Shown: positions 8,786 to 63,702 of the stretch, one piece after another | How positions within the stretch are numbered: the first letter of the stretch is position 1 | Layout: every line of letters begins with the position of its first letter | Source: Mytilus edulis | Taxonomy: Eukaryota | Length of the DNA stretch: 64,000 nt | Assembly (NCBI RefSeq): GCF_963676685.1 | Contig: NC_092351.1 | Span: 84,382,001 to 84,446,000 of the forward strand | Direction: 5' to 3' | Notes under the pieces: generated by a model | Database searches by the model: none | Seen by the model: the letters and a program-made list of their open reading frames with translations, nothing else | What the model was told of the DNA's origin: nothing | Translations under genes and position numbers: made by a program

Positions 8786-10249
8786 CATATTGCTAGTATG
8801 ATAGCCCTACGTGACCGAAATACTAGTACACAAAAATATTCATCCGAGAGAAACGCACAATAAAAAAAATACAATAGTCGACACAAGATGCAAACCTCGG
8901 AACTACAACGAACATTTTCAATCAATTAAAGACACCACTGGATATCAGAATCAGTGAGGCTCATACGTAACTAATATAAAATCTTGAACGTTATATATAC
9001 GTAACTTAATTAAATCTTGAAATTTATACATATGTAACTAATATATTAAAATTTCGAGCTTTATACATAAGTAATTAATATAAAATCTCTATCTTTTATA
9101 CGATTATTTTTCCAATACTTCTCCAGACAATAAGCATGACAGTGGAAAGTCAATTTTATAAATATATGGGACTACAAACGATTTGACATAACAGATTATC
9201 CAAACCAAGCCATAACAGAAACCTGAAAAATAAATACATGAATGTTGGATGAACAAAATACCAAAAGGCGTCATCAATTCACAGTCGGTCTAACCGTCAT
9301 ATTCGTCATATAAACAAAAAATAGAGAAAATATAGTTAATATTTAAAAGTTGGTGTGTACACTTTTTATTCATAAACAAAATCCAACAAGTATGCACATT
9401 GCAAGAATCTACACAGTTTGTCATCTTGAAACCAACAATGTATCAAGTTTGATACTTTAAAAAAATAATGTTATAACATCATTACTCCCTTAATTACAAT
9501 TATTAATTTTTCTATCTAATGCCAAAAAATCAGCAACAATTTTGTGTGACCTGTCAGCTGTCTCTGGTTTACGTCACTGGTTGTTACATACTTATATTGA
9601 TTGTAAAGTCTGGGAAACTTTTCACTAACATTTTTCAAATCGTACAAGAGATATAAAACAAGTGTCAAAATAATAAAAAACAGTTAGAAACAGTTCATCA
9701 GAAGAGCAAAATTGACATCTTTTGATCAAAAATTGTTTTCTTAAACAATTTGTTGTAAAGAAAATTTTTTTTCATTTTTTAAAACGCTTGTTTTTATAAG
9801 GTATACAATTATTGCAAAAACAGATAGTGAACATTCTGTTGAAAAACTATTCGAATATTCATAAGTTTTGCTTTTAATGACCTTTCCAGTTGCAAGATTT
9901 TAAAAGTTTCGATTGAAGCGTTCCTAATGATGTAAGTGAACCGGATTCGGACCTACCAAATAATTCAAAAGATATTTCTTTACTTCACTTAACACGTATA
10001 ATTACTAGGTTCCAAAGGTTGATTCGAAATGTACATGTTTTAGTTGATATACATGTAAGTAATTATTCAATCTTATATAGAATTTTTGGAAACATGTATG
10101 TAGTATCTCTGTTTACGGTTCTTTCCATAAATTTATTATTATACTCAATAATTTTTATCATCCATACATTGTCTAGAGAATGTCAAGACTAATCATTTCA
10201 ATTAATTGTATAATTTAACAATCAAATATATGTATCTACTTTAGTCGTT

Positions 10250-11463
10250 TCAATTTGGAACAGTTAACAAAAGTAAATGTAGTCCGAAAATTATTCTGTT
10301 CACGTTGATGAGTTCCGTATGTTTGATAGAAGATACAATTATATCCTTTGCATTAATTTTTTCAATAAAAAATGTAGGAGCCAGTTTGTTGAACGGCTCA
10401 AATTGAAAACTTAGATAGCTGTATCCCCAAAAAAAATTAAGTATGTACATTTCAATAATACCATTTTTGTTGTAATGTAAAAACAAGCTGAGTTGGTTTC
10501 CTAAAAAAATCTTATTTGTATCAGCGTTTGAAAGACAAGAGCAAGTTGTTCTATACACACTGTCCCTTGTCTCAATATTCTTCGAACATTGTAAAAGGGG
10601 TATTACTTTTCGAAATCCATCTTTTTGTTGCACAATCCCGATCTTAAAAAAAATATCACCATCATTTGTCTCGAAAAGAATGTCAATCTTTGTTTGGATC
10701 GCATTTGAGTTTACAAACTTTTTAGGACGTGTAAAAATAACCGGAGTTCTAGAACTATTGCTTTGAAATGTGTCACTGAGCTTTGCATTAGACACTGTTC
10801 TATTGTCGTCAGAAATGTATAAATCTTGATGCAATGTGTTACGATCAAATACAACCCCATTTGTTTCCATCGTTATTGAAACGGTTATTAAATCAGAATT
10901 ATACACAGCGAAGACCGGCTTCAATGGATGTATAAAGTTCACATTCTTAACTGTATGCAGAATGGTCGTAGCATTATTTTTTTTAGATCTGGATAGGAAT
11001 AAAACTGATGAATGAAATGGTCGATAGGTAAGCATAAATCTCGCTTCAAAACAATATGGTCTGGTTTCACATTTAATTATGATTGTACTATTAAGCAAAA
11101 CTGTATTGCCAATCAAAAGATAGATGTTAGACTTATGTTGAGAGATAAATGCTCTGACAGACAAAATTGATGGAAATAATAGCTTAGTGCTGATGGTGTC
11201 ATTTGTTAGTCCGAATTCAAAAATAAGTACTTCACCGTGTTCCTGTAGTTGCAAAATTGGTTCATGAAATCTTATCGAAAATTCTATTGAACTTTCTTTT
11301 TTTGGAGAAAAAGACGAGTTTGAAAAACCACCTTGAAATTTAAAGAGCCTTCTTCTCGAACCACACAACATATGTTCTGATGGCACAGTAGCTACAGTCT
11401 GATTATCAGCTGATCTACATGTAAACTGGCTTCCCACTTGAGTGTCAAACTTCAGTTCCGTGA
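10250..11463 (-). CDS. TRIM paralogue B, last coding exon: two PRY-SPRY/B30.2-like repeats and a hydrophobic C-terminal tail
   Basis: Phase-1 acceptor ttctattatag|tc. PRY-like starts KFDTQVGSQFTCRSADNQTV and VFDRNTLHQDLYISDDNRTVSN, SPRY-like LIFEFGL and LKPVFAVYN, tail RIIFGLHLLLLTVPN*. Paralogous exon at 28589-29793. Confidence 0.8.
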
Positions 11464-12149
11464 CTATAATAGAAAATAGTAGCATATATAATATAAGTAA
11501 TCTCACATATATAAACAAGTTAAGTTTAAAATAATAATAAAAGGTATCAGCAGGCCACTTCTTTCTTTTTTAGCTGAAAAATTAAAAGAAAATCATAAAT
11601 CTACCAAATATCATCAGGTGAATGTTCACAAGACATACGTTAATATGTAGGAGATAACCGTGCTGTATTTTAAGCATAACCTCTGCAACTCTTAGATTTG
11701 ACTATCTAAAATTGAGTTTACCTTACGACGCCCAGCGGAGCAAAGTAAATGGTGTTTTCGACAATAAAATCAAGAATACCATGCTTATAATTAATAAAGA
11801 CAATTTCAATTTTATATAAACATGCAGTTGCAAGTAATGGAAATGCTATCCCTCCTAAGTGTATCATATATATTAAATGTCCAAAGTTTTTCAGTTTTTG
11901 TCATAAAATTGTCTGTTCGTTTTATGAGTTTGAATACTCCTTCTGTATATTTTGAATCACTTTTACAGATGTATAGATTTTTTAACCAAAAATAATCTTG
12001 TATGTTATCACTCACATATTATGTCCGAGCGAGCATTTGAAACGGATTAGTTTTGTTCAGTAGGTGAGTGAAAGCAAATTAATATGTAATATTTTATGAT
12101 ACATAATTCAATCATGCAGATCCGTATTGTATATATAATATATACTTAC

Positions 12150-12611
12150 GTTTACCATGTTCTCGTATACCAAGTGGTATAAGTGCTATTTCTGGTATAA
12201 CCAGGAACACAATTAAAAGCAACAGAAAGGGCCATGCTGTTATTGTTTTAATATCGTTACAGTATTCTTGGTTGTTTTCATCGTCATGGTACTGTCGATT
12301 GTAAGCACGTTTGGTGCGCCTTCTATTGCGCCTTCTATTGCGCCACTGTCTTTCAATTTGATTCGCTTGTTCAATTTGCCATTCGACTGACTGCATTCGG
12401 TTCAAAGGTAAATTGTCATGATACTCGTGATAGATATTAGTAATAAGCTTGACAGGCATTATTGCTATATTTATGATGATTTTAATGGGTATATGTAGTA
12501 TAATCCGTATCAATTGTATGATAAAATAACTAGTGCTAGTTGCTACAGGTAGGAAGATATTTTTTCCATATGCGTGTATCGTATTTTCCAAATGAATGTC
12601 TTGGTGATTCC
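12150..12611 (-). CDS. TRIM paralogue B, middle exon (154 codons): hydrophobic segment, Arg-rich stretch, predicted TM helix
   Basis: cttacag|gg acceptor and c|gtaagt donor; 462 nt, phase 1-1, in frame with both neighbours. Contains YFIIQLIRIILHIPIKIIINIAIMPV, RNRRRNRRRTKR and AWPFLLLLIVFLVIPEIALIPLGI. Confidence 0.82.
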
Positions 12612-13548
12612 CTGTAAGTATTACAAAAATGGACTAAATACCAAAGAACACGAATTCAAAATAACACTAATTAAATGAATTGGTAGGCAGCATTTTTTCA
12701 AACTCATCACAACCTTTCAAAATCAAAAACGTTTACGTGAAAGATTATAAGGTACAAAGTCGTCTTGATTAATTTTTGTTTATTTCAGACAGCATTTTTT
12801 GAGTTATGAAAAAAACAAAAATACTAAAATTACATAAGGCAAAAGAGGTGATTACTTTGCATTTATTTTCACCTCCTCAGCTTGTTTGGAAAAACGAGCA
12901 AAAGGAAGTGGACATTTAACTCTCAGTTATGTAGAAATGCATATTATATACAAATGATTAAACCATGCATTAAGGATACCACTTTTAAATATCATCTGTC
13001 AGGTGATATGACTGGTTTTGGTTTTGTTCTCATTCAATGTTCAATAATTTTTTTATATATTGAAAATAAGTTTTGCGTCTGGCAAACAATTATTTTTTTA
13101 CAGCATCGATAAATCCAAGGAGGAAAATACTTTACTCTCAAACTTGAAAACTTATATTTTGAAAATGTTATGAATCATTCTCCATATGAAGAGGTACAAA
13201 ATTCTATATTGAAAACAAAAGTCTTGAACAAGAAATGTCGACAAAATAAGGATGGGTCTTACTGCTTAGATCTCCTGCTACCTGGCATGAGAATGATGAA
13301 AAGTGTTCACATTTGGTTTATGAAAATAGGAAAGTAAAATTTGATAAAGGAAACAATGCCAGAACTAATAGATGAAAAGGTCAACATATTTAAAACCACA
13401 CCTGGTCTGAAACATGAAAGATTGAACTGGATATTTTGATGAGAGATCATAAAAAAATGTTCCTTCTAGTTGTATACAGATTCCATTATACTGCTTATCT
13501 TACAGTGCATCTTTTAAATCAAATTAAAGTAAATATATTTGTACTTAC

Positions 13549-14668
13549 CTATAACCTGATTCACTAACAGTATCTCATCGTCATCTCTCTCGTGGTTTTC
13601 CTGACTCTGTATGCTTCTCTCGAACAATCGAAGACTATCGTCAACAAATTTGTTCACCTCCAAATCAATTTCGTCTTCAGTTGAGTCAACTTGGGTATTT
13701 AAGTACAGTTTCAATTGACCATCTACTGTTGGATGGACGTTCAAAAAGGAGCTAATACTATTGCAGTTAATTAATTGTTCAGAAAGACTACAACATTCAC
13801 TTGCATTTTTAAGAAATTTACATAAGTAATCTTTTCTTGTAACTAATTTTGATTCTATTCTTTGGAAAGCAATATCATATTGATCAAGAGGTCTTTTGAT
13901 ATTTCTATCATATATTGGGTACAAGTTTCTGTGGAACTTATCCCCTTCGTCTTGGAGAGTACCAGTAGTCTTTTGGACCTTTTGTAGTTTATATTTGACA
14001 CGTAATATTTGCGTTCGAAGGGATTCAACGTCAATACCCAAATCTTGTTTTCTCTTTTTGAAAACTTCTTCAATGTCTTCCAGAGCATGTTTACTGATTT
14101 CCCGATGATCCTCGAGTGCACATGAAGGACACAGAACACTTTGACAATTTGCAGAATTACAGAAATATTTCAATTTCGCCCGGTCATGATTAGGAATCTG
14201 ACAAATATCAAAATTGTCTTCTTTCTCCTGGAATGTCTCAGAATTGTTAACAATTAAGCTGTGCGATTTGTTTTCTGTTATGTGTTGTTGCCGACATATT
14301 TCACAAAAATCCATCTTACACTGTTGACATGTATGAGTAACATCCACAGTACGACCACATTTGCAGCATTTTTTGAAGGCATTACGATATGAGTGAGTCT
14401 GCAAAAATGACGTTAAATCCCTTCTTGTGTTATCTTTTGGAAAATCTATAGGACTCTCCACCTTATGCACAGCGTTACAAGACGGACATTTAAGTGTATC
14501 CTTTCTTCGACCGAGCCTTTTTATACATTCTGAGCAAAACGAATGATGGCACGGAAGCAGTCTTGGTGTACGTCCATCTTCATCAAACACTTCTGTACAT
14601 ATGCTGCATTCTAAATATCGACGTTCTAATTCAGTTATCAAGCTGACCATATTTTTATCAGCCATCAT
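13549..14668 (-). CDS. TRIM paralogue B, first coding exon: RING (C3HC4), B-box1, B-box2, coiled coil; spliced product 931 aa
   Basis: CSIC..PCHHSFCSEC..CPSC RING and two B-boxes. Acceptor tttttcag|aATG, donor G|gtaagt at 13549. 1120+462+1214 nt = 932 codons including the stop, with no interruption. Confidence 0.9.
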
Positions 14669-15367
14669 TCTGAAAAATTTATATTCGTATAAGTTCTGAA
14701 ATACCATAAACAAATATGAAGGTAATGTTGAGGTAGCACAAAACAAAGATTTTATACCTCCAATTCCCCAGTTTCAAAATGCTTTAACTTTCTTTATTAT
14801 GCTTGAAAATTTATAAAAGTGATATCTATGGACAGTTAACAAATTAATGCAATGCTAGAATTATAAAACAATTATGTAATCAATTATAATTCTAACTGTG
14901 TCTACAAAATTTTACAAAAAATTTCAACTGTCAATTGCAATTAGCTTCTTCATGGATACCCCGAGAGGTGGATTTTTTAATATGTTGCTCCTAGAACCAT
15001 TATCTACAAAAGTGCGTCTCAGATTTTGGATAGAATGTTTAGATCAAACTTTACACATAATCAAACATTATTTACATTTATGTGGTAAAGATGTTGACAC
15101 TAATTACAGATTTATGAGAAAATGGAATACGATAGCAATAATTTGAGACACCTTATTGAAGCTCCTGGTGTGCTGATTAAGATTTCGTTAAAGTTTCCAG
15201 TATAGCTATACAGATGATAAAGCTAAATTCATTCAAGTGAACTGACCACAATTTTGCCATTAATTGCATACTAATTACATAATTATTGCATAGACAAAAC
15301 ATTGCATTTATTTAAAGTTTAATCTTTTATCTATCTACATATATCTCTTTCATTAATCTATATGCAG

Positions 15368-16080: not shown

Positions 16081-19000
16081 ATGGCTACCGATAGACGGAA
16101 TGAAGACTGTCTGGACTTCGGTGATGTAAAACGGACTCGTAGTACGAATGTAGCGCAGCTTACTAAATTGTACAACGAATTGAAGAAGAATTTAATTTCA
16201 TATGAGAAGATGGAACATGCAAAACAATTATATTCAAAGTTATGTGAAAGGTTTGAACAATTTAAGTTAGCTCACTTACAGTGTTTAGATTTGTGTACAC
16301 AATCAGAAGTTATAGCAAATTTGGAAGTGAACTATGAACGTTGTCATGAGAACTTTGTAGAACTCAGGGATAGATTTTCCCAGTATATCGCGAGTGAAAA
16401 ATCGCATGAAGAGGAAATACCCGAAGAAAGGGATACAGTTTCAATTGATAGCAGATTGAGTTCACGATCTCCAGTTTCATCACAATCTAGATTTCGCAGT
16501 GCCAAAGCTAAGCGACTCATCGCAGAACTTAAACTCAGGAAATTATCAGAACAGCATGAACTAGAGCGTGCACAAATAGAAATTAAATTTAGACAACAGG
16601 TATTTATTCAACTATCCGAGATGGAAGAGGCCAATATCGAAGAATCAGTGTGACAAGAAGCAGTGGAAGAAGATACAGATAATAACAGTGGAATCATGAA
16701 CATTCGGAACATTTCGCAAACAGTCTCGCAAACATTACAGAGCTCTGTTCCTGAGAGTGAAAATTAATGTATTAAAATGAACTCTTTTTCCGGATAAACT
16801 GTAGCAACTGATAAACCAAAGATCAACATTAATAACAGTACACAGGGAATCAGTGCTCAGTCTGGATTTTCAGATGTAAGTGTTTCTAGCATAGATTCGG
16901 CTTTTCAACGCCTAGCATCTACACTTCACGAAGGGTTTAATTTGCCAAAACCAGAATTTTAAACTTTTAATGGAACTCCGTTAGACTATAGTAAGTTTAT
17001 AAGGAACTTTGAGACAAACATTGAAGGTAGAATAAGTGATAATAGTTTGAGACTGAGTTATTTAATTCAGTACTGTAGAGGTGAAGCAAAGTGTTGTATA
17101 GAAGATTGTGCATTATTAGATTCTGATGAGGGTTGCAAACGTGCTAGGGCAATATTGTACTCCCGATACGGTAGGCCACATGTAATTGCTAGAACATTTA
17201 TTGAAAAATTAGAGTACGACGCTCAGATTAAAGCGTCAAATATTGAAGGTTTAACTAAATTGGCATTAGAAATGCAAAAATGTGAAATCACATTGTCTCA
17301 GTTAGGTTTTAATTCAGATATTGATAATTCTGAAATTTTAAGGTGTATTGTTAAACGCCTTCCAATGCATACGAGAACAAGATGGGTCGATATTGCTCAT
17401 TCAATTAGTGAGTCTGGTAGAGAACCCCGTTTTTCTGATTTAGCTAAATTTGTAGACGAAAAATCACGCATTGCTAGTTCTATGTATGGTTACGATCTTT
17501 GTAGAGAAAACAATCAGAACAAGACTGATAATAGGGTAAACATCATAATAATGATACAGTTAATTGTAAGGTTACTACGTTAAGTACTCAAAGTTTAAAT
17601 AACACAGCTAAGTATGAGCAAAAATGTAAATATTGTACAGGTACATGTGTTTATTTGACATCTTGTAGCAAATTCAAGTCAATGAGTTTAGATGATAGTT
17701 ATAAATTAGTACGCATGTTAAAATTGTGTTATAATTGTTTAAAAGGAAAGCATTTTGCTAATAATTGTAGAAAACCAAAAGCATGCACTGTATCTGACTG
17801 TAATGTTAAGCATTATATTTTATTGCATAGTTGGTCTAAGCCCGGTTTTGATCATGCAGCTACTCAGCCTTCAGTTAATTGCGCATCTACTAAAGGTTCT
17901 ATAATTAAGAACTGTTTAGGAATTATTCCTGTCCTCGTTAAGGGTCGGAACGGTAACTCTTGCAAAACATTTGCCTTGCTAGATTACGGAGCAGATAAAA
18001 CTTTATGTGATGAAAGATTACTTCAGAAATTAAATATAGCCAGCAAGCCGGTCACTTTCGAGATGTCTATTGTTAGCTCTTCTGGTAGTACAATTCACGG
18101 TCAAGAAGTTGACTTACAAGTAAAAGCTGTTGACGGAAATGATAACGTGTCTTTAAAAAAGGTCTGGTCAGTAAACAAGCTTCCAATTTCAGCTCGATCT
18201 GCCGCAGAAATGTAGATATAAGAAAATTGTCGTATTTAGCCGATATACAGATACCCTCTACTGATTTAACCGAGGTCATGTTGTTAATTGGTACAGATTC
18301 ACCTAACGCTCACATTCCGCTAGAAGTAAGGTCCGGTAACGAAAACCAACCATATGCAATTCGCTCACGCCTCGGATGGGCTATTCCTGGTCCTATTGAA
18401 GATACGCATGCGTCAAATGTTATAAATTATAATTGAGGAGGCAAGGGATGTTTTGTTGCAGCGACAATTAGAATGGATGTGGGCCTCTGATTTTGATGAT
18501 AGAGCACGAGAAGACAAGAATGGCTTGTCTATAGAGGATAAAGAGGCTATGAAAATGATGGAGTCATCTTTAACGCAGGAAGATGGCCATTTCAAGCTCG
18601 GACTACCTTGGCGCGATAGAGAGACCACGCTACCAAATAACATGGTTCTTGCACATGCCCGCTTACAACAATTGAAACGCAAATTGTCAAGTAATGAGAC
18701 GTTACATAAAATGTATACGACAACTGTCAATGATTACATAGAAAAGGGATATGTCAAGGAGATGACTAATATTGAGTCTAAATCAAAACGTATTTACCTC
18801 ATCACCCAATAACAAATGAAAATAAACCTGGAAAAGTTCGTGTAGTATTTGACTGCGTATCGAAGTATCAAGGAATTTCACTTAACAGCCAACTTCTACA
18901 GCGGCCCGATTTAATGAATAGTTTAGTAGGTGTAATTATCAGGTTCAGACAAGACAAAGTAGCTCTAGCTGCCGATATTGAAGCCATGTTTCATCAGGTA

Positions 19001-21789
19001 CGCGTTCGAGAAGACGACTGTGATGCGTTGCGGTTTTTATGGTGGCCTAACGGTAATTTAGATCAGAAACCTAAAATTTATTGTATGAACGTTCACTTGT
19101 TTGGGGCTACATCGTCGCCAAGTTGTACTGCATATGCACTTAAACGTACGGCAAGAGATTATGCACAATTATTTGACAAAGAAGTTGCGTTAACTGTAGA
19201 AAGAAATTTCTACGTCGACGACTGCCTGAAATATGTACCATCAGAGCAACAAGCTATTAAACTCGCTACAGACCTGCAATCAATGAAGAAAATGGGTGGT
19301 TTCCGACTTACAAAATGGCTCAGTAACAGAAGAAATATTTTGAATGCAATACCAGAATCAGAACGGGCTTCATCTGTAGTCAGTCTTGGACCTAGTGATA
19401 TGTTGCCAAGTGACAAAGCCTTAGGCGTTATTTGGGATGTGAATGAAGACAAAATAAAATTTAAAGTAAAACTATCAGACAAACCTCTGACAAGGCGTGG
19501 TATACTATCAATCGTGAGCTCCATATTTGACTCTTTTAGACTGGTTTCTCCAGTTCCACTTAGAGCCAAAGCTATTGTACAGCACGTATGCAAAGAGAAG
19601 GTTGGGTGGGATGAACAGATTCCACAAGAGTACGTTGATAAATGGAAAAGTTGGGTGAAGAACTAACCATGTTTAGAAAATTTGTCCGTAAACCGTTGTG
19701 TCCTACCACGAGATGTTCAACATGTTAAAAATGTACAATTGCACATATTTAGTGACGGTTCAGAACTTGGATATGGCGCGTGTGCATACCTCAGGGTCGT
19801 TGATGAAAATGACAGAACTACTTGGTCTCTTATGATGGGAAAAGCTCGCTTAGCACCAATTAAACAGGTTTCAATACCAAGACTGGAATTATCAGGAGCT
19901 GTTACTGCTTGTCGTTTGTATGAGATTTGTCAGATGAACTTGAATTAAATATAAATACGGTTACTTTCTGGACAGATTCAACGATTGTTATAGGGTACAT
20001 TAGAAATACGTCACGACGATTTGAAACATTCGTAGCAAATAGATTGAGCGTTATACAAAATACAACATCTCTAGATCAGTGGCGTCACGTTGACTCCAAA
20101 CAAAACCCTGCTGATATAGCGTCAAGAGGCATTGACGCCTGCGATAGACAAAATCTTGAACTTTGGTTGAACGGTCCAAAGTTTCTTCATAAAAACTCTG
20201 AGCACTGGCCAAGGAACGTACTGGACGAAGAACTAGGGATAGCTAAGACTGATACTGAAATCAAGAAGGAGATAGCTGTTCATGCTACAACCAATAATGC
20301 CATAGACAATTTGTTAGGATACTTCTCCGACTGGATAAAACTCAGACGAGCTATTGCATGGTTTGGGAGATTTAAGATTTATTGCAGAAATCGTTACCTT
20401 GGACATCATTTGCCGTGTAACAGTGGTAATCTTAATGTAACAGAACTTCGGGAGGCTACCTATAAAATATTAGCACATGTTCAAATGAGTTATTTTTCAG
20501 ATGAAATAACAAACTTGAAGAAGGCAAAGCCCGTGAAAAAAGGAAGCCGTATTGCTTCTCTCAATCCTGTTTTGGTTAATGAACTTATCCGATCAAAAGG
20601 GCGCCTAAATTATGACTTAAGCACTTGTCCCGTAATACTGCCAAACACACATCACGTGACTACGCTTATCATCCGTTATTATCACGAAACCACGGGACAC
20701 GTGGGAAAACAACAGGTGCTTGCAGCTTCTCGTGAAAAATATTGGATATTGAAAGGATCCAGTGCTGTGAAGACAGTTATCGATCGTTGCGTACCATGCA
20801 AACGACAACATGGTCCGTTTTGTAAACAGCAGATGGCACCCCTACTCGAGGAACAGATGACTGCAGACAAACCTCCTTTTACCTTTGTCGGAGTTGACTA
20901 ATTTGGTCCATTAAACGTTAAACTTGGACGGTCAGTTGTTAAGAGATATGGATGCCTCTTTACGTGCCTTACAACAAGAGCGGTTCATATAGAAATAGCC
21001 AACAGTTTAAATACGGATTCTTTTATTTCAGCCTTTCAACGCTTTACAAGTAGACGAGGCATTCCCAAAAAGGTCTACAGTGATAATTGAACACATTTCG
21101 TTGGCGGTGAAATCGAACTTCGAAAAAACATTGAACAATGGAATAAAGCAACTATATCAAATTATATGCTACACAAGGACATTATTTGGACATTTAATCC
21201 CCCATATGCAAGTCACCGCGGTGGTGCATTGGAACGAATGATTCGTTCAACAAGGAACATTTTAAAATCACTGATTAATCAACAACTACTTAGCGATGAA
21301 CAATTAGTGACATTTATGGCCGAAACTGAGCGTATAATGAATGATAGACCGATAACAGCAATAAGTGACGATTGTCGTGATTTACCAGTTTTAACGCCAA
21401 ATATGCTATTATTGATGAAGAGCAACACGTCAACACCACAAGGTGTGTTTGACAAAAAGGATATATATGCAAAACGATGGTGGAAACAAATACAACACCT
21501 AGCGAATGAATTCTGGAAACGTTGGTTGAGAGAATACTTACCAACCCTACATCAAAGAAGCAAATGGCAGAGGGAACAACGAGATGTTGAAATAGACGAT
21601 ATTGTTTTAGTTGCTGATGGACGTATACAGAGAGGACAATGGCCTTTAGGTAGAATAGTCGAGGTCACAAGGAGCCGTGATGGTCATATCCGTATCTGTG
21701 TGGTCAAAACTAGCTATATATATATATATAGTCAGTCACAGATTTTTAGACCTATAAATAAACTATGCTTACTCGAGTGTTCTAAATAG
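16081..21789 (+). pseudogene. BEL/Pao gag-pol polyprotein broken by stops and frameshifts
   Basis: Gag RLSYLIQYCRGEAK, CCHC knuckle CYNCLKGKHFANNC, protease [20 protein letters not shown] and YVDD, RNase H LHIFSDGSELGYG, integrase HETTGH..CVPC, GVD*FGP, SDN*, GGALERMI, spread over about 9 ORF pieces. Confidence 0.94.
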
Positions 21790-28588: not shown

Positions 28589-29793
28589 CTAAAGAAAAAA
28601 TATTATTACAATCAAGCATAAAAAAAAGTTGTAAATGTTGAATATATTGCTATTTTTAGTTGAAGATATAACAATATCCTTCGCATCAACTTTTTCAACA
28701 TAAACTTTAAGAGGCTGGTTATAAAACTGTCCAAAATGAAAGACTCGTCGACTGTACCCAAAGTTATAATTTACAACAGAGACTTCAATAAAACCAGCTC
28801 TGTCGTAATGTAAAAATAAGCTGAGTGGGTTTCCTACCATAACCTTATCAGACCCAAATGACAGGCAATAACCATCTGTAGGCAAATAGCCGAAAAGATA
28901 TTTCCAAACACATTTTGAACATTCTAATAGTACAGTTCTTTTAAAAACTCCGCCATCATGTTTCCCTATCCCGAGCTTAAATAATAAATTGCCACTGTTT
29001 GAATCTTCAAAATCAATAATTATCTTTGTTTGAATAGTTCTCGAGGTTCCAAAGTTTTTAGGGCGAGTAAATATCACAGGAGTTTTAAAATAGTCGCTTG
29101 GATACGTGCCACTAAAATTTTTATTAGACATAGTTTTATTATCTTCAGATATGTATAAACTCGGGTACAAAGTGTAACCATCAAACCCAACTTGATTTGT
29201 TTTAATGGTCATGAAAACAACATGTTTTGTATATGTAGCAAAAACAGGCCATAATGGATGTTTAAATTTGAAGGGTTGAATTCTATGCAACTCTATGGTT
29301 GTCTTTGTGTATGGAAATTTAGCAAGAAACAAAAGTGACAAATCAGAAGGTTGATAATAAAGTATAAAATGCCCTTCAGCAAAATGTGAATTGGTTTCAC
29401 TTTTGAAAATGTCTTTACTTTCAATTAAAACCATATTTCCAATTGAAAGACAGACGCCAAACTTGTTTTGACAAGAGACACCACTGACAGAAAAATATGC
29501 TGGAAACAATAAGTGTGTGCTAATGCTGTCATTTGTTAATCCAAATTCAAAAATAAGTAATTCATTAAACTCTTTTCGTTTAAAAGACATTTGGTTGAAT
29601 TTGATAGAAAATTCTACAAAACTTTCTTGTTGATGAAAAAAAGATGTGTTTGCAAAAACACCTTCATACTTATAAAGTCTACTTGTCGAACCGCAAGACA
29701 TTTTTCCAGTTGGTTTTGTAGCTACAGTCTGATTATCAGCTGATCGACATGCAAATTGACTTGTTACATGAGTGTCGAATTTCAATCCAGTAA
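28589..29793 (-). CDS. TRIM paralogue C, last exon: tandem PRY-SPRY-like repeats and hydrophobic tail (open frame)
   Basis: Acceptor ttttcag|tt, phase 1. KFDTHVTSQFACRSADNQTV, LIFEFGLTND, LWPVFATY, LYISEDNKT, tail FFLCLIVIIFFL*. Clear paralogue of 10250-11463. Confidence 0.78.
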
Positions 29794-29949
29794 CTGAAAA
29801 TATATAAATATATATATGTATATATATATAAAAGAGTTCTTAGTGTAAAATATAATAAATTAAGTAAATAATTTGAAGAAGTAAATCAATCAGCTACAGT
29901 TTAACAATTAGAATAATTTTGACTTTTATTCTTTATATAGCAAAAATAG

Positions 29950-30300
29950 TACCAGTAAGTTTGTCATCGATTCTAGTTACAAGTCCTCTATCTGTGTCAA
30001 TCACGTGTAAAAAAAATAAAGATATGAAGCAGACCTTCTTTTGTGGTAGTATAGTTGGTCTCAAGCTCATTAGGGTATATGCGATATTAGCACCCAGTAA
30101 AATGTTTGTTATTGAGTGACAGAACATCATCTAAATATCTGAAAGTGAAATTAAAGTAATTCGCATGATACTTTTCCCGTTTGTCTTTGCGAAGGTTCTG
30201 AATGAATTCTGCTTCACACGTGTACGAAAACAAATCGGCACGTAGGGGTGTATAATTCATATCCATTAGAATACCGACTGTGTCCTGAAATATCATTCCC
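29950..30300 (-). mobile_element. Penelope-like element reverse transcriptase fragment (intronic, decayed)
   Basis: FQDTVGILMDMNYTPLRADLFSYTCE (cf. QxxGIPMGxNxAPxxADLFL) and FTFRYLDDVLSLNN, followed by GLVTRIDDK. Confidence 0.75.
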
Positions 30301-30524
30301 CCAAACTAACTACAAATGTACCAATTAAATCACAAACTTTCATAAATATACCAATCCTATCTGTAACTGTTTATATCACACGGAAATTAATGTGAAGTAA
30401 AAAAGATGTTAGAATGTTTAACTTTCAACGATACTTATTGAACTCAAAATCCAACTTACATGAAAGTGTTATAATATCAATACACACGAACAAATGCAAA
30501 GTTTCTGCTTGTATTCATACTTAC

Positions 30525-30970
30525 GTTTTCCGTGTTCTATAAGGGTGAGTGGTATCAATAGTATTTCCCGCACAAATATGAAAATACAAGTGGCCAATAC
30601 AAAAAACCAAAATAGGGCAAAAATATGCATCAGGTATTTGGCCATGGGAATGTGTTCTCTGAGATATTGTTCCAATTCAAAAGTATCACCATATGCAAGG
30701 AATCTTTGATAAAGCCTTTGGGCATTTCTGACATTTCGACGCCTCTGTCTAACGTGTTCTTGATTAGGCTGTATAGCGTATGGGATTATCGGGGAAACAG
30801 TTGTTTCAGCTTAAATGGTATTTTTAAAATCGTGTTGATTAAAGATACCACATATAAGACACACTGTTTTACTTTTTGCAAGAAATAAATAAACACAATT
30901 GTTATATTGTTGTAGATATATTTTCCAAAGACATTTAAGGAATTCGCCGCCTGACATCGTCGTTGGTTTC
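30525..30970 (-). pseudogene. TRIM paralogue C, middle (membrane) exon with a frameshift
   Basis: atttgcag|ga acceptor and c|gtaagt donor; 446 nt (not 3n). The entry frame GNQRRCQAANSLNVFGKYI..ILKIPFKL aligns with copy B, then stops at TAA 30786-30788. The B-like remainder (QPNQEHVRQRRRN..IFALFWFFVLATCIFIFVREILLIPLTLIEHGK) is in another frame. Confidence 0.8.
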
Positions 30971-33598
30971 CTGCAAATATTACAAAAAAAATTCAATGTT
31001 TTCTAACATATAGATGATTAAAAGATTATAATGCAATAACAACGATCATCTATGGAAAAAGTTACGATTATCATAATTCTTAAATTCAATACACTCGTTT
31101 AGTTACTATGGAAGTAGTTTGCACCTGAGAGATTTTCATTTAGAACATAATTAGTTGAACTGTTTGCAATTAAATAAATATATGTCGCTCCTCTTCTTTA
31201 TGACATGTATAATACTAATAGTCAATTCATGATTTTAACTTAATGATGTAACTAAAAGTGGCATGTTGACTGGGGACAAACCATGTCGTGAATTGAAAAG
31301 TAAAATTTAAAATCAGATTACACTAAAATGTTAACAGATGGAAATATGAACAAGTTCTTGGTTATCAAACGACTTGTTATGCGAGTTTGAGTGGTAAGAC
31401 TAGTAATCGATCTATTAGGAGGTCATTTACAAAATACAAAAAGACTATATAAAAGGATACAAATATGTGTTCCTTATAACACGACAATGTACAAATAAAT
31501 TATTTCCATCTTTCAAAGTCGAATAAAACTCAAAATAATCTCTGTATGATTCTTATGAACATGATAGATGTTTGATTCACAATACACATATTTTTTTGGT
31601 ACTTTCTTTTCTCTTAGAGCTAATAATGCATATTTTCCTAACTCTTTTTGGTGCTAACCTGCATCTAATTTGCCTATTTACCTATTCGGCAGATCGTGTA
31701 TCCAATGTCATCTTAGATTGTAACAAAAAATAATCGGTTTGGACCGTCACCAATTTGGGAAAAAGAGTGCAAGTCATCTGTATGACTTTACATTGATACA
31801 GGAAAGATGATCAAATTCTGTTTATAACTACGTAAATTTTTACAAACATATTTTATTTTGTAGGTTTCATTTTTAACGTGATAGTTAGGGGATATAAGTC
31901 ATAAAATTAAGATTTATAAAGGCGTCTTTTTGTTGTTGCATTAAACAATTTGGATGACCCTTTGTGTTCTTTATTTTCACAATTTTAGATTTATCGTATA
32001 ATAACTTTATGAAAATCTTTTTTCATTTCCTTTCCGTTTCCATTAAATTAGAATCTGAACTACAGTAAAACATAAAAGTTTCTTAGTTTCATAATAAGAA
32101 TTGTATTTATTGTGTTGTATTATTTACTTTTGTATTATCCTTTAGAAATTAAGAATAACTGATTTTGCAATAGAAATATAATTTGAATCACATTTACAAT
32201 TCAATTGAATAAATGCACGTCATTCTGTTAGATAGTTTGTGTACTTTATTTATCTTCGTGATGTGATTTGGTGTTTGTTTAGTTTTGAACACTTTTATGT
32301 GTGAGAAATTGTAAAAGAGGGGCAAAATATACCATAGGGAAAGTCAAACTCATAGATCGAATATAAACTGACAACGCCATGGCTAAAAAATAAAAAGACA
32401 AACAATTGTACACAAGACACAACATAGAAAACTAAAGACTAAGTAACACGAACCAAACCAAAAACTGGGGATGATCGCAGGTACTCCTGAAGGGTAAACA
32501 GATCCTGCTCCACATGTGGCACCTGTCGTGTTGCTCATGTTATTACAAACCCGGAATACAGTAGACTAAGTAAAATGTCTATTGTGGTAAAATAAATTCC
32601 AAGTTGTATACTTTAAATTAATATTCAAGTAATTGGTATGAAATGCAAGTGTTATCAAGAGTGTTGAATTTAGTTCATTGAATACTAATTTTGTTTTGTA
32701 AATTTCATGAGGGGCTAGAGGTGGCCCTCAGTTCTAAATACTTTGAACTCAGGCCAACATACTAAAACTTTCACATAGGAAAAAAGTAATTACCCTTGAA
32801 ACAAAGACACATTTTTTGGCTTCTCACATTTTGAAGCAATTAAGATTCCTTAATCAAACATTGTTTGTATTGTAATGTTAGTTTTGATTCATTTCCCCAT
32901 GTTTTAACAATTAACATTGGCCGCGATATCTGATCTTAAATTATGTGTTGTATAAGGAAAAAGTCTTAACTCATCAGATGGATTCACATAGAAATACATA
33001 TAACAAGAATACAGATCAGAGATAACTTGCAGTTATTGACAGCAAGTTCAAAGCCAATAACAACTTAGAAAAAAAATCATGCACCCAAGATAAAGACTCA
33101 ATTATCAATCAGTTAACATCCAACATCCAATAGGTTAAGTGTAAAAACGTCACAAACTGTCAGAGAAAAACATGACTAATTGCAATGTCACGATACAGGT
33201 ATCGACATTTTGTGAATCAATGAAAGTGCATGCGTATAAAACAATAATATAAAGTTTGTTTTTAACTTACTGATAACAAAATACATATCAATAACAATAA
33301 AAACTATATTCAAAATCTAATTATAGAGTTAGATTGGTAACTTTTTAGAAAAAGTTTATCTAAAGGATCGATAGGTTTACAAGGATCATTTCTAAATTTA
33401 CGGGTATCGATGTGCTATCCCGTTTGAAACAACTTGTCTACAAACACAAAGCAACTTCAAAACCAAATATACAAATCCAGGATAGTTTATTAATGTTATA
33501 AAAATGTAGGATCGCTATGTCTCGCTTTTTCGACAAAAGTCGAAGGCTCGACGAAAAAGGAACAACATAAGCACTTAACTGCAACAGACTATATTTAC

Positions 33599-34745
33599 CT
33601 TTTGCCGGTTCGATCAAGGACTCCAAACCTTCTTCTCTTTTGGTGTTTTCTAGAAGTTCAACATTACCATTAAACGTGTGAAGATAATCATTGAAATCTA
33701 TATTTGTCTCTGAATCGTTTGTATCGCAAGATGAATCTTCAACTGCTATATTTAAGCACCGCTTAACATGAACGTCTAAAGTCTGATGGACGCTGAGAAA
33801 GGAGCTCATGCTATTGTGGTTTATTAGTTGTTCAGAGAGGCTACAGCATTCACTCGCATTTTGAAGAAAACTGTCTAAATTATGTTTTCTTGTCAAAAGT
33901 TTTGATTCTTTCCTTTTGAAAGCAATAATATATCTATCTATGAGCCTTTGTCTTCTGTTTTCCAATTCTGCAATACCTCTGTTATATATAGCATCCATGT
34001 TTTGAAGGAAATCATCTTTTTCATCTTGTAGTGTATTTGTTTTGTCAAGGACTGTTTGCTTGGTAGATTCGACATGGGATATTCGTGTTCGAAGAGATTT
34101 TGTGTCATTTCCTAATTCACTTTTCCGCTGTTTGAAAGCTGCTTCAATGTCTTCAAGATCATGCTTACTGATGTCTCTATGTTCATCTAGTGCACATGAA
34201 GGACAAAGAACACTTTGACAGTTTGAAGAATTGCAGAAATATTTGACTTTTGCCCTTTCATGATGAGGATTTTGACAAACATCAAGGTTGTCATCTTCTT
34301 CTCGGAATGTCTCGGATTTGTTAATGATAAGATTGTGCGTTTTATATTTTGTTTCGTGTTGACAACGACAAATTTCACAAAGGTTAATATTACATTGCTG
34401 ACATTTAAATGTTATATCAACGGTATTGCCACACTGAGAACATTTCTTAAAAGCATTGTGATCCGAGTGAGTTTGCAAAAATGAAGTCAAATTCCGCCTT
34501 GTGTTATCCTTCGGAAAATCGATTGGTCCATTCTTCTTTACTTTATGTACAGCGTTAAAGGTCGGACATTTAATAGTATCCTTTCGGCGACCGAGCCTTT
34601 TTATACATTCTGAACAAAATGGATGATGACAGGGGAGAAGCCTAGGTATTCGTTCATCTTCGTCGAAAACTTCTGTACATATGCTGCACTCTAAATATCG
34701 ACGCTCTAATTCAGTAATCAAATTGACCGTATTTTTAAATGCCAT
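33599..34745 (-). CDS. TRIM paralogue C, RING/B-box1/B-box2/coiled-coil exon (last RING Cys replaced by Phe)
   Basis: Open 382-codon frame from ATG 34745, donor G|gtaaat at 33599. CPTFN versus CPSCN in copy B. Confidence 0.85.
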
Positions 34746-41016: not shown

Positions 41017-43238
41017 TCAAACATTTCGCAAATACAAGTATGTTTCTGGTATATGTTTCATAACCATCAAACAGAGATGGTACGCGGCGGCATTGTAAGC
41101 ACTGTTTTTCATTTGAAGAGATAACCTGAAGGTTGCAAAAGCCTTTTCTTCATCTCCTACCTCGCTAAAACAATACCCGAGAAGATTGAGCGCACGATGA
41201 CCATCGTTTTCGTTTTTCACTATTTTTGTTATTTGCTCCAACTGCCCTAGTGCTTTAAACTTGTTTTTCTTGTCATTCAGTCGCTGATGTAGTTGAAAAG
41301 CCAGGAAATAGTAATAGACCGCTGGGTGATATAAGAAATAAAAACTTGCTTTATCGTAGTCGTTAAGTTCACATTCAAATTTTACAGCTTCTGGCACACA
41401 CCGGACATCATGACCTGTTAAAATTACATCGTAGCACACGGAACCAGGAATGTTTTCATCGCAGATATCGGGAACGTCATTGGTAATTGATATTTCTCCG
41501 TCGGAAATTTTTACATTTTTGCTAGAACAACAAAACCCTTCATACTTCAGAATCAAAGATTTTTCGAAAATTTTCGCTATTCCTTCTGACATTTCGGTCA
41601 AATCGTTTTGAACTAATAAAAACATCGCCTGGTAAAGACGTCCCGATAATTGATCCAAAGAGCATCCTAAATCGAAAGAAGAGCTTGCTGCATTAAGTCT
41701 AATGTGCTTTTCTTCTAGATTGGAAGAGTCGATGAATTCTGACTTGAATATTCCTCCTTCAAAGTATAATGGACTAGGGTCCATTATGTTGATATAATCC
41801 AAATGGTACAAAATTCCTAGTCTGATGATTGAAAATATCTTCAAAGCGACTATGATTTCTACATTCAATTTACTTACTGACTGGTCAAAAATATCGAGTA
41901 ACTCTGTTAATTTTGACCCTTCTACATATCCTCTAACCATAGAAATCATTATTCCAAATGCAGCTCCATACTTACTGAATTTTTTTTTATTTCTAATACA
42001 TTCATCAGATCCCTGCGATAATTCTATCAGAACTTCCGATAACTTCGTCAGACTTGGAGGGTTTCCTTCTGAAACGATTACACTTTTTTCAAACTTTCGT
42101 AGCTTCACATCCTCTAAGGGCAATCTACAGTGTTGCAAAACAGAAATTATGTCGGATAAAATACAATCAATCATATTCACAATACTTTCTCGTAGATCTG
42201 AATTTTCGAATTTGTGATAAAACAAGTTATGATTACTTATAATGAAATGCTTAAGAGTCCTCCGAGAAATGCATTCTTTTAACATTTGAAGACAACGCTT
42301 AAGCACGCGTATTAAATTTGATTCCTGCAACTTTATCAAACCCTCTTCTGAAACCCAGAAAATAATAGTCTTTAAATGGTAAGTGCTAAGTATGTCCTTT
42401 GTCACAGGTTCTAAGAAGGCTTTAAATATGGTCTTAAGTAGAACAAAAGTGTACAGCTGAGATTCATTAAAACTCCAAACGAGTTCCCGTTCAACATAGC
42501 TAAAAGAAAGTCTCCATTGCAGCTGACATTCATCAGAGGTTGGATCTCCTACTGGAACGACATGAACTGGTAAATCGCGTGCTTTATCTATGAGATGTTT
42601 AGGTGGCCATATGCTATTCCTTTCTCGGCTTGTCCATGCAAGAGCCACCATTGGCCATTTTGAACATTGTATACCCTCCGTGGTGTCCAAATCAGTACTT
42701 CGACAACTAATGTCAAAATTTACTGAAGATGAGGAGCAAGGGCCATGTTCATGAAATCCGGACATCGATGCATAGGATGATAACCAATTTCCACTTTCTG
42801 GGATGATTTTCAAGTTACGGTATTTCTCACTACTAAGAAAATACACACCATCCTTTTCTATTAGGAATTCCCTGACTTCTTTATTTACAGTGGATTCATG
42901 GAGACAATTGAAAAAAGCAAGTTTCACGAAACAGCTTTGATTTTGCTTTGTGTTTAATAGAAATGTACACTTTTCTGAGTTTATTTCCTCTTTTTCATCC
43001 AGAATCACAATCATGTTTTGATCAATAAACATACGGTCTACGTCGCTACCAGGTAAATAAGACCCTTCCACAGTACTTCCTGTCGATAAAACATCAGTAT
43101 CATGCAGATGATGCATTAACATTTCATATAAAGGTGCTCTTGCTTTATCAATTTCCATTCTTGTGAAAATTCCCTCAGACTTAAGTAAAAGTGATACAAT
43201 TTCAGAAATCTTTGCAAAATATTCTTCCTCGTAATTGT
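41017..43238 (-). CDS. cGAS-like receptor (cGLR; Mab-21 nucleotidyltransferase plus C-terminal TPR), main coding exon
   Basis: Catalytic motif STGSTVEGSYLPGSDVDRM, third acidic residue in DLDTT, Mab-21 motifs WPPKHLI..VHVVPVG..QWRLSFSYVERELV, STYHLKTIIFW, LKHFIISNHNLF; TPR ALNLLGYCFSEVGDEEKAFATFRLSL. The frame stays open upstream of ATG 43158 to a phase-1 acceptor ctttacttgcag| at 43238. Confidence 0.92.
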
Positions 43239-61747: not shown

Positions 61748-62367
61748 ATTTTGTGTATGTCTGTGTGCTTTCTTATGTCATAGTGTATAAAACATGCTGT
61801 TATTGAAATTCATTTATTATATACTACTCTAGTGGTCTCTTTATATGTGCTTGTTCTATAATTATAATCATGATAAATCTTAGTTTTACTATATTATTAA
61901 TAGGTGTAGTCTTGGGAGTAAAGGATCATCTGTAACATTTAAAAAAAACTCAAATCTCCTCGTCTGGGTAGAAAACAATAACATTAGAAAATAATATGGA
62001 CTCTATATAAAATGAAGGGTTAAACACGAAAAAATTATCAACGAAAATGTTGTTAAACAGTATTTTAATGCATGATGTCTTTTAATTTTGATCGTTACAC
62101 TTCCATCATGCACGAAAGGAATCACATAACTGAACCATAACGTACATGAACTTAACCATGACACTAGTGAATTAAACCATGACACCGAATTTTCTGTAAT
62201 CTTACATTGTGTGTAAATGTAGGCTTTTTTTAGGACTAATTGACTGCAGATTTATACCATAACGAAATATGGGATCTAACAGATCTAACAGTAAAAAAAT
62301 AACTGCACTTTATGCATTAGAAACGAACAACAACATTTGACATACCCAAGCTTTATTCTGTATCTAC

Positions 62368-63250
62368 CTATAATCTGATTCACTAACAGTATCTCATCTT
62401 CATCTCCCTTATGGTTTTCTAGACAATTTATGCTTCTCATTAACAATCGAAGACTATCATCAAAGTTTTTTTCCCCCTCAAAATCAATTTCGCTCTCAGT
62501 TGAGACACCTTGGGTATTTAAGTACAGTTTCAATTGACTATCCACTGTTGGATGGACGTTCAAGAAGGAGATCATACTATTGCAGTTAGTTAACTGTTCA
62601 GAAAGAATACAACATGCTCTTGCATTTTAAAGAAATCTACTTAAGTAATCTTTTCTTGTAACTAGTTTCGATTCTATTCTTTGGAAAGCAATATCATATT
62701 TATCAAGAAGTCTTTTAATATTTCTATCATATAAGGGGAACACGTTTCTGTGGAAGTTATCTCTTTCCTCTTGTAGAGTACAAGTAGTCTTTTGGACATT
62801 TTGTAGTATAGATTTGACACGCAATATTTGCGTTCGGATGGATTCTACGTCAATACACAAATCTTTTTTTCTCTTTTTGAATGCTTCTTCGATGTCTTCT
62901 AGAGCATGTTTACTGATTTCTCTATGATCCTCGAGTGCACACGAAGGACACAGAACACATTGATATAATGCCGAATTGCAGAAATATTTCAATTTCTCCC
63001 GCTAATGATCAGGATTCTGAAAACATCAAGGTTGTCTTCTTCCTCTTCGAATGACACATAATTGTTAGCAACTAAACTGTGCGATTTGTTTTCGGTTCTG
63101 TGTTGTTGCCGACACAATTCACAAAAAATCCATCTTACACTGTTGACATGTATGAGTATCATCCACAGTACGACAACATTCGCAGCAATTTTTTAAGCTA
63201 TTACGATATGAGTGAGTCTGCAAAAATGATGTTAATTGTCTTCTTGTGTC
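62368..63250 (-). pseudogene. TRIM paralogue D (close to copy B): B-box/coiled-coil exon remnant, RING absent here
   Basis: Colinear with about 13549-14430 (..TRRQLTSFLQTHSYRN..EILLVNQIIG|gt). Frameshifts near 63000-63120 and TAA at 62627-62629. The 5' end abuts a LINE fragment. Confidence 0.9.
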
Positions 63251-63702
63251 ACCAAACCCTAAACATTTTAAAGTTTTGCATATAAAGTTCCACTCCAAAG
63301 AATCGAAAGCTTTTTCAATGTCCAACAAGACAAGAAAGCCAGGCATATCTTCCTCATCAACTTTTTGTAACACGTGTAGACTCACCAATATATCTGCATG
63401 TCATAAAGCCGGTTTGAGTTTTAATAATTAAGTGATCAAGGACGTTTTTAAATTCTATTTGCAATACATGTTGATACTTTTCTAAAGTCTACATTACGTA
63501 GTGAAATAGGTCGCCATTTTTTTAGAAAATGTTTGGGTTTTCCGTCTTTGGGTAGACAGGTGATAACTTGTGTTTGCGAAATTGATAATTTACCTATCTT
63601 AAATGATTCTTTGAAAGAAAACAGCAGGAAAGGATAAATGTCGGGACAATTTTGTTTTATAAAATTCAGTGGTATAACCATCCAAACCAGGATATTTTTC
63701 AT
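63251..63702 (-). mobile_element. L1/Tx1-clade LINE reverse transcriptase fragment
   Basis: ITCLPKDGKPKHFLKKWRPISLRNVDFRKVSTCIANRI and LVLLDIEKAFDSLEWNFI (RT motifs 1-3). Confidence 0.88.

Follow-up and report, generated by a model that had tools for sequence, protein, structure and literature searches.

A candidate transmembrane TRIM ubiquitin ligase with tandem B30.2-like domains in a gene array of Mytilus edulis

Can three open reading frames (ORFs) of a mussel genome encode one TRIM ubiquitin ligase that spans a membrane and, if so, on which side of that membrane would its C-terminal domains lie? The question is raised by a 64,000-nucleotide stretch of Mytilus edulis DNA (C8:84382001-84446000 of a 1.37-Gb assembly; contig NC_092351.1; hereafter the window), which is AT-rich (GC content about 0.32) and carries several copies, A to D, of a TRIM-like gene. 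The original prediction, made from the sequence of copy B, was that its three minus-strand ORFs (13514-14746, 12112-12591 and 10250-11518) are spliced into a 931-residue receptor-like protein, in which a RING, B-box and coiled-coil (RBCC) module is joined through a membrane segment to tandem PRY-SPRY-like domains. The exons of copy B were translated, searched and folded one by one, and public full-length paralogue proteins stood for the whole. Copy B is most likely a real gene without defects, made up of three coding exons, in a subfamily of TRIM E3 ligases that is confined to Mytilus. Judging from these sequences, the protein probably has a cytosolic TRIM module, a transmembrane (TM) segment serving as a type II signal-anchor, and tandem B30.2 domains in the lumen of the endoplasmic reticulum (ER) or endosomes or on the cell surface.

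The coding parts of copy B and the introns between them are as follows.

13549..14668, minus strand: coding exon 1 (373 codons plus 1 nt), with a RING, two B-boxes and a helical region of coiled-coil type
12612..13548, minus strand: intron 1 (GTAAGT...AG, phase 1), with exactly the junction of the public model P0093
12150..12611, minus strand: coding exon 2 (462 nt), a symmetric phase 1-1 cassette with the membrane segment
11464..12149, minus strand: intron 2 (GTAAGT...AG, phase 1), with a junction common to P0093 and P0016
10250..11463, minus strand: coding exon 3 (403 codons plus the stop codon TGA), with the tandem B30.2-like domains and a hydrophobic tail

Together, the three exons comprise 931 codons and a stop codon. 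All of them are open, over a distance of 2.8 kb, and their splice sites are intact; the same holds for L013, a duplicate of copy B that is 90-96% identical to it. Both donors read GTAAGT, both acceptors are AG behind a pyrimidine-rich tract, and the split codons encode glycine (G) and leucine (L). The same GT-AG, phase-1 splice sites are shared by all the C8 paralogues, which keep the acceptor and the AAAC/GTAAGTAT donor of exon 2 with small variants. P0093, a public M. edulis model of 612 amino acids (aa), reproduces copy B letter for letter: exon 1 from its second methionine (14665), the G, exon 2, the L and 77 residues of exon 3. The older M. galloprovincialis model P0016 (VDH90478.1) crosses the junction between exons 2 and 3 identically. 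The proposed junctions, 13549/12611 and 12150/11463, are thus real at the level of gene models, since P0093 uses exactly both of them. The whole last exon is annotated in paralogues, namely P0036 (XP_071128235.1, 942 aa, locus L014), P0100 (835 aa, copy A) and P0037 (XP_071140804.1, 858 aa, contig C11), and models from M. galloprovincialis and M. californianus (P0033 and P0035) follow the same plan of three exons, the last of them complete.

Exon 1 has the sequence features of a bona fide RING/B-box TRIM module.

14474..14608, minus strand: C3HC4 RING finger with all zinc ligands present (PF13445 and PF00097 above curated cut-offs)
14261..14368, minus strand: B-box-1-like Cys/His cluster, read from the translation and without a Pfam match of its own
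14087..14203, minus strand: B-box 2 (PF00643, 26.0 bits against a cut-off of 24.1)

The RING (ORF residues 46-91) was matched by PF13445 at 40.0 bits (cut-off 25.2), by PF13639 at 35.3 bits (27.3) and by PF00097 at 33.6 bits (21). By PDB sequence, the closest solved relatives of this exon were the RINGs of TRIM3, TRIM32 and TRIM2 and the RBCC chains of PML and KAP1; the last two align as far as about residue 219, and the paralogue P0036 gave a weak match to the intermediate-filament (coiled-coil) family (E value of 4.6e-4). A hydropathy scan found no hydrophobic segment in exon 1, which therefore encodes no signal peptide.

Exon 3 carries two domains ahead of its tail.

10862..11461, minus strand: B30.2 (PRY-SPRY)-like domain 1 (exon-3 residues 1-200), which holds the Cys15/Cys33 pair
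10304..10861, minus strand: B30.2-like domain 2 (exon-3 residues 201-386), a diverged duplicate of domain 1

An AlphaFold model of exon 3, computed from an alignment of 32 relatives, consists of two all-beta domains and a low-confidence terminal helix (predicted local distance difference test, pLDDT, 85.9; predicted template-modelling score, pTM, 0.81). After re-ranking with VIA-align, nearly all of the top 50 structural neighbours were SPRY/B30.2 domains, mostly from TRIM proteins and butyrophilins (BTN), with Z scores of 10-12. Domain 1 (residues 8-201) covers most of the B30.2 domains of TRIM21, TRIM25, TRIM5 and TRIM72; it superposes on the TRIM21 PRYSPRY with a Z score of 10.4 and a root-mean-square deviation (rmsd) of 3.3 over 141 aligned residues (model residues 9-201), and on TRIM25, TRIM5, TRIM72 and BTN domains with Z scores of 10-11. 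The sequence-profile search of the PDB returned B30.2 chains only, and these weakly (TRIM21 PRYSPRY, E value of 0.016). Pfam PRY (PF13765) was found in domain 2 (exon-3 residues 203-237) at 25.3 bits, below its cut-off of 27.5 (E value of 1.2e-5), and in 10 of the 32 relatives at an E value of 0.01 or less, and Pfam SPRY (PF00622) had no match in copy B and one among the 32 relatives (E value of 1.3e-5). The nearest ESM Atlas clusters of exon 3 were also SPRY, with scores of 0.82-0.87 that lie below the 0.9 level and are a lead only. Laminin-G/neurexin LNS pairs and tandem galectins headed the Foldseek search with the whole model, ahead of single TRIM B30.2 domains; however, with TM-scores of about 0.2 and rmsd values of 14-20 Å, we read them as generic matches between tandem jelly rolls.

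Domain 2, folded alone, reached a pLDDT of 81.7. A comparison of the two domains with hhalign gave a probability of 97.3% (E value of 2.7e-11, 157 columns), which identifies domain 2 as a duplicate of domain 1 that has since diverged. We conclude that exon 3 encodes a tandem, strongly diverged pair of B30.2 domains, a divergence that explains why public annotation sees only a RING protein here. The predicted tandem PRY-SPRY character of the last exon is thus borne out for domain 1 by its fold (AlphaFold, VIA-align) and for domain 2 by its homology to domain 1, the structure of domain 2 by itself being generic.

Between these two parts of the protein, exon 2 contains a hydrophobic stretch, a polybasic run and a TM-like segment, all three of which had been proposed and are present.

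12442..12531, minus strand: first hydrophobic stretch (exon-2 residues 27-56), interrupted by R, H, K and N
12307..12342, minus strand: polybasic run RNRRRNRRRTKR, found in the B lineage only
12166..12237, minus strand: conserved TM segment (exon-2 residues 125-148), with a Kyte-Doolittle (KD) hydropathy of 2.83 and a summed insertion free energy on the Hessa scale (Hessa dG) of about -0.3

Only the third of these elements is conserved. It is TM-grade in every paralogue and in P0036, P0010, P0035, P0037, P0031 and P0046. The first stretch has KD values of 2.1-2.5 and a summed Hessa dG of +1.9 to +4.5 in copy B, copy A and L017 (+4.5 in copy B), with an Eisenberg mean hydrophobicity of 0.74-0.75 (0.74 in copy B), as against 0.36 in L014; it is borderline TM-grade in copies A and B, clearly below the threshold in L014 and absent from distant members. 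The polybasic run is shorter by one RNRRR unit in the 90% duplicate of copy B. The conserved segment ends in a conserved juxtamembrane motif, (P/R/C)-E-(I/M)-x-L-(I/L)-P-(L/F), with EHGK behind it in most copies (also EHNK, GHGK and EHGD); prolines and an acidic residue are thereby placed within the bilayer or at its edge. The motif may serve in oligomerisation, as a cleavage site or in contact with a partner.

On which side of the membrane, then, would the tandem domains lie? P0036, P0010, P0035, P0037, P0031 and P0046 have exactly one mid-protein TM segment, and P0010, P0035, P0037 and P0031 lack a TM-grade C-terminal segment. The single span in these relatives places the RBCC module and the tandem domains on opposite sides of the membrane. 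Because it lacks a signal peptide and depends on E2 enzymes of the cytosol, the N-terminal module of 370 residues should remain in that compartment. Lysine and arginine are commoner on the N-terminal side of the TM segment in P0010, P0035 and P0029; the positive-inside argument that had been drawn from the polybasic run, by contrast, applies to the B lineage alone. An oyster protein without the TRIM module, P0021 (Saccostrea cucullata XP_062619423.1), consists of a short N-terminal tail, a TM segment, the tandem domain, a further TM segment and a tail ending in basic residues.

The cysteines of the tandem domains may also bear on orientation. The Cys15/Cys33 pair is present in all the Mytilus TRIM-fused copies and in oyster P0021, and is missing as a pair from the TM-less P0026, P0027 and P0028 and from the signal-anchored P0029; P0009, P0025 and P0030 have one of the two residues only. 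Copy B keeps C15 and C33 and has lost C107 and C114, of which its duplicate L013 has lost C114 alone, and C131 and C137 were gained together in the B lineage. The conserved pairs originally described therefore comprise C15/C33 in copy B, whereas C107/C114 is lost there and C131/C137 is lineage-specific. Read from the alignment, this largely pairwise turnover in the B lineage is what disulfides would show. Taken as a whole, the predicted receptor-like TRIM stands as far as domain order is concerned (Pfam, hydropathy, AlphaFold, the duplication test and the full-length paralogue models), and the indirect indications just listed make an exoplasmic orientation of the tandem B30.2 domains likely but unproven.

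Several observations weigh against this arrangement or are neutral, some of them concerning orientation. Exon 3 of copy B has seven N-glycosylation sequons, four of which align with copy C (residues 20, 48, 87 and 220), as originally noted; however, sequon counts fell within those of composition-matched shuffles in every copy (p 0.12-0.57), so the sequons are not a signal of topology by their number, and two of the four aligned ones sit inside the PRY motif. The charges flanking the TM segment of copy B itself are balanced. Relatives with neither a TM segment nor a signal peptide occur in Pinctada and in assemblies; an extracellular location is therefore not inherent in the domain, and the fold appears from these sequences to work in the cytosol too. 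Finally, the borderline first stretch in copies A and B allows, on hydropathy, a three-span or hairpin model with a cytosolic B30.2. The same gene could make a membrane-tethered version of a conventional cytosolic sensor, either because the first stretch also spans the membrane or forms a hairpin, with the C-terminal segment as a tail anchor, or because exon 2 is skipped, in which case the TRIM would have the tail anchor but no TM segment. Since exon 2 is flanked by phase-1 introns on both sides, its skipping would keep the frame and give such a TM-less isoform, and in P0008, a M. edulis gene model of older date, exon 3 follows directly on exon 1. As far as is known, moreover, the B30.2 domain lies in the cytosol or the nucleus in every TRIM that has been characterised. 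We nevertheless consider a cytosolic tandem rather unlikely. The first stretch is below TM grade in P0036 and absent from P0010, P0035, P0037, P0031 and P0046, all of them single-span; in copy B, the two stretches are linked by a loop that includes the polybasic run and is rich in arginine and lysine overall, which disfavours its translocation. P0008 is a chimera that runs into the B-box of the next gene, and the oyster protein has its domain between two spans with both tails short.

A related question is how the protein ends, since the hydrophobic tail of copy B had been read as a possible glycosylphosphatidylinositol (GPI) attachment signal.

10253..10294, minus strand: C-terminal hydrophobic tail, about 12 apolar residues in copy B (helix 387-400 predicted, with low confidence)

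The tail is present in copy B, but a GPI anchor holding the ectodomain at one end, with the TM segment at the other as in tetherin, seems an improbable use of it and the less parsimonious reading. Copies B and C and L014 do terminate 0-2 residues past an apolar stretch of 12-14 residues, which is short for a TM segment, and a small-residue pair, Ser-Ser, lies about 11-12 residues upstream of it. However, the GPI transamidase prefers a small residue two positions after the omega site, and in copy B the residue two positions past the candidate serine is an isoleucine. Moreover, the homologous segment has at least 19 residues with charged residues behind it, as is characteristic of a TM segment, in copy A (P0100), L017, P0046 and P0021: 11 residues follow it in P0100 and L017, 8 (with an arginine) in P0046 and about 44 in P0021, the last stretch being basic. 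This longer tail indicates a second TM segment in these relatives. The summed Hessa dG is +6.2 in copy B as against 0.1-1.3 in paralogues, where the tail is longer and TM-grade, and the tail of copy B looks, from this comparison, like a degenerate second TM segment rather than a GPI signal.

Other adverse observations concern the fold and the product. As described above, Pfam PRY is below its curated cut-off and SPRY has no match in copy B; domain 2 taken alone is a generic concanavalin-like jelly roll, which structural comparison with all PDB representatives did not separate from those of galectins or carbohydrate-binding modules (CBM), being about as close to galectin-1 (Z score of 8.3) and a GH43 module (8.7) as to TRIM25 (8.2). 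Although the splice junctions of the predicted 931-aa protein hold, that product is itself unannotated: the sole public model of copy B, P0093, stops 77 residues into exon 3, and the 931-aa form was not found in a collection of 5.8 billion proteins by word-seeded searches that are non-exhaustive (their length window admits 931 aa, and one of them also missed P0093). P0093 leaves exon 3 through an internal donor, GAA/GTACTT, with the exon ending at 11231, and continues into a separate terminal piece.

9196..9222, minus strand: alternative terminal coding piece (VSVMAWFG and stop) of P0093, reached from the internal exon-3 donor

This piece lies 1 kb past the normal stop codon, and the weak donor GTACTT (window 11229-11231) is found only in the B lineage. 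The 612-aa isoform may be either a regulated truncation or annotation noise. If it were the main product, copy B would be a decaying or re-wired recent duplicate making a TRIM module, a TM segment and a 77-residue stub, and the full architecture would exist only in some paralogues (L014, copy A and the C11 gene). Decay of its array neighbours (copies A, C and D and the duplicate of copy C, described below) would fit such a history, as would the loss of the otherwise conserved C107/C114 pair and the weak C-terminal tail of copy B. The ratio of nonsynonymous to synonymous substitution rates (dN/dS) between recent duplicates also fits: at 0.55-0.72 for exons 1 and 3 (0.55 for exon 1 and 0.71 for exon 3), it points to neither strong constraint nor clear positive selection. 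However, all three exons of copy B are open with intact splice sites, as in its duplicate, the internal donor is weak, and exon 3 folds with high confidence. Public pipelines often report only one isoform, and we think it improbable that copy B makes no 931-aa protein. The value for exon 2 is 2.6 but rests on about 16 changes, and the ratios are uninformative on positive selection between recent duplicates.

The preferred reading, a type II receptor-like TRIM with its tandem domains outside the cytosol, suggests a mechanism. The N-terminal TRIM module, having no signal peptide, would stay in the cytosol; the conserved TM segment of exon 2 would act as a type II signal-anchor; the tandem B30.2 domains would be exposed in the lumen of the ER or endosomes or on the cell surface; and the C-terminal hydrophobic segment would be a second, partly degenerate span leading back to the cytosol rather than a GPI signal. 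The coiled coils of TRIM proteins form antiparallel dimers that hold the two RINGs apart, and RING activity or dimerisation needs higher-order clustering. In the mussel protein, the coiled-coil dimer may lie along the cytosolic face of the membrane, with two TM segments emerging near its centre and four B30.2 domains on the opposite side. A multivalent ligand bound by the exoplasmic B30.2 domains could then cluster dimers in the plane of the membrane and so trigger cytosolic ubiquitination and signalling by a full-length protein active as a ligase. A rival reading of the function is that of an ER-resident ligase, the lumenal lectin-like domains of which would pick glycoproteins for degradation. 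A more far-reaching scenario is offered tentatively, as somewhat short of probable: a group of receptor-type TRIM ligases in mussels, genomically linked to a cGAS-like receptor (cGLR) gene, in which B30.2 domains at the surface, in the phagosome or in the ER lumen bind non-self or glycan ligands and clustering across the membrane activates the RING. Each would be a pattern-recognition receptor and its own E3 ligase at once. Their origin would lie in exon shuffling, by which a TRIM gene acquired a B30.2 cassette bracketed by TM segments that oysters still have on its own.

How does this protein compare with known systems? Like the class IV TRIMs (TRIM5alpha, TRIM21 and TRIM25), it has a RING, a B-box and a helical region of coiled-coil type followed by B30.2, with domain 1 superposing at Z scores of 10-11, and it belongs to a lineage-specific, tandemly duplicated array of the kind typical of immune TRIMs. 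It differs from them in that a TM segment lies between this helical region and B30.2, B30.2 is duplicated and the C-terminus is hydrophobic; its B30.2 is too diverged for Pfam SPRY, with PRY below the cut-off, and the sensor is predicted to lie outside the cytosol. The class XI TRIMs (TRIM13/RFP2 and TRIM59) are likewise RBCC ligases tethered to a membrane with a cytosolic RING, but their TM segment stands at the extreme C-terminus with nothing after it, whereas the mussel segment is followed by 403 residues, about 400 of them in folded domain.

The PA-TM-RING proteins (RNF43, ZNRF3, GRAIL/RNF128 and RNF13) resemble the mussel protein in predicted logic, not in family, in that an exoplasmic binding domain is connected by one span to a cytosolic RING. 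However, their ectodomain is N-terminal, behind a signal peptide, and their RING is C-terminal, and the mussel protein would have the opposite, type II polarity; a Pfam scan of copy B found no PA domain, and its RING is of the TRIM type and accompanied by B-boxes and a putative coiled coil. Butyrophilins (BTN3A1 and BTN2A1) are single-pass membrane proteins that likewise contain a B30.2 domain, a structural neighbour of the mussel one (Z score of about 10), but theirs is cytosolic, their ectodomain is Ig-like and they have no RING, whereas the mussel B30.2 pair is predicted to lie across the membrane from the N-terminal module. Two bivalve proteins without a TRIM module, S. cucullata XP_062619423.1 and M. 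californianus XP_052099732.1, contain the homologous domain, in tandem or singly, between a signal-anchor TM segment and a hydrophobic or TM C-terminus. Where the mussel protein has its RBCC of 370 residues, they have no more than a short N-terminal tail; they are uncharacterised.

In the literature, we found nothing on a TRIM with an internal TM segment and an exoplasmic B30.2, nor on the mussel family, and we class the protein as a new architectural variant of the TRIM family, the sequences of which are public but uncharacterised. They are labelled only "uncharacterized" or "RING-type domain-containing" because Pfam misses the C-terminal 400 residues. To our knowledge, every characterised TRIM B30.2 reads its ligands inside the cell (viral capsids, antibody Fc, RNA-bound sensors and phosphoantigens). 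If the proposed orientation is true, TRIM sensing would extend to the extracellular or lumenal space, and invertebrate immunity would include a receptor and effector in one protein; such a protein would also be a natural test of clustering as the switch for TRIM RINGs. The family further illustrates cleanly how domains accrue through phase-1 exon shuffling, and it shows birth-and-death evolution in a highly variable mussel genome.

Searches with exon 3 among 1.84 billion cluster representatives yielded the 32 relatives used for the model, and every one with a named species was from a bivalve (Mytilus, Saccostrea or Pinctada). The family thus appears, by sequence, to be restricted to bivalves. 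In the M. edulis assembly, seven exon-3 paralogues lie within 210 kb on C8, with more distant ones on C11, C4, C1, C13 and C25. Other copies in or near the window, and a further gene among them, are listed here.

1131-2281: exon 1 of copy A (the remainder of this copy being in L016), with the RING part (2093-2281) and the B-box/coiled-coil part (1176-2066) in different frames
28589-34745: copy C
41017-43158: 713-aa ORF with matches to the Mab-21 nucleotidyltransferase and Mab-21 C-terminal domains and a weak TPR match
62285-63702: copy D, a fragment of TRIM exon 1

Copy C had been taken to repeat the exon structure of copy B, but it does so only in remnants. Compared with its duplicate at C8:84.53 Mb, to which it is 98.6% identical, copy C lacks one nucleotide of exon 2, near 30798. 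A zinc-ligand cysteine of its RING is replaced with phenylalanine (34557-34559), and in its truncated public model, P0094 (416 aa), exon 1 is followed by a small exon of unrelated sequence near 32279-32425. L015, the duplicate of copy C, is interrupted by two in-frame TAA stop codons in exon 3; the defects of the two copies thus lie at separate sites. The frame change within exon 1 of copy A is also found in L017, and P0100, the model of copy A, starts inside the B-box region and has no RING; a RING-less form with B-box, putative coiled coil, TM segment and tandem B30.2 domains therefore exists with the whole last exon. The 713-aa ORF is a gene of the cGLR type inside the TRIM array and in the same orientation. 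A birth-and-death array with recent duplicates, broken copies and a RING-less copy, together with this linked cGLR gene, favours an innate-immune role but proves nothing.

Copy D is about 69% identical to copy B over residues 80-373, contains several stop codons and adjoins an ORF with reverse-transcriptase-like motifs; no exon 3 matching it was found in the window. A model from M. coruscus, P0014 (1129 aa), fuses a different, RING-less N-terminal region to the B-box, coiled coil, TM segment and a B30.2 copy, and is probably a mis-join. Between copies B and C lies a GC-richer region (0.35-0.40) with fragmented ORFs that match Pao peptidase, reverse transcriptase, an integrase zinc finger, DUF1759 and DUF5641.

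16081-21789, plus strand: region with the features expected of a decayed BEL/Pao long terminal repeat (LTR) retrotransposon, which it probably is

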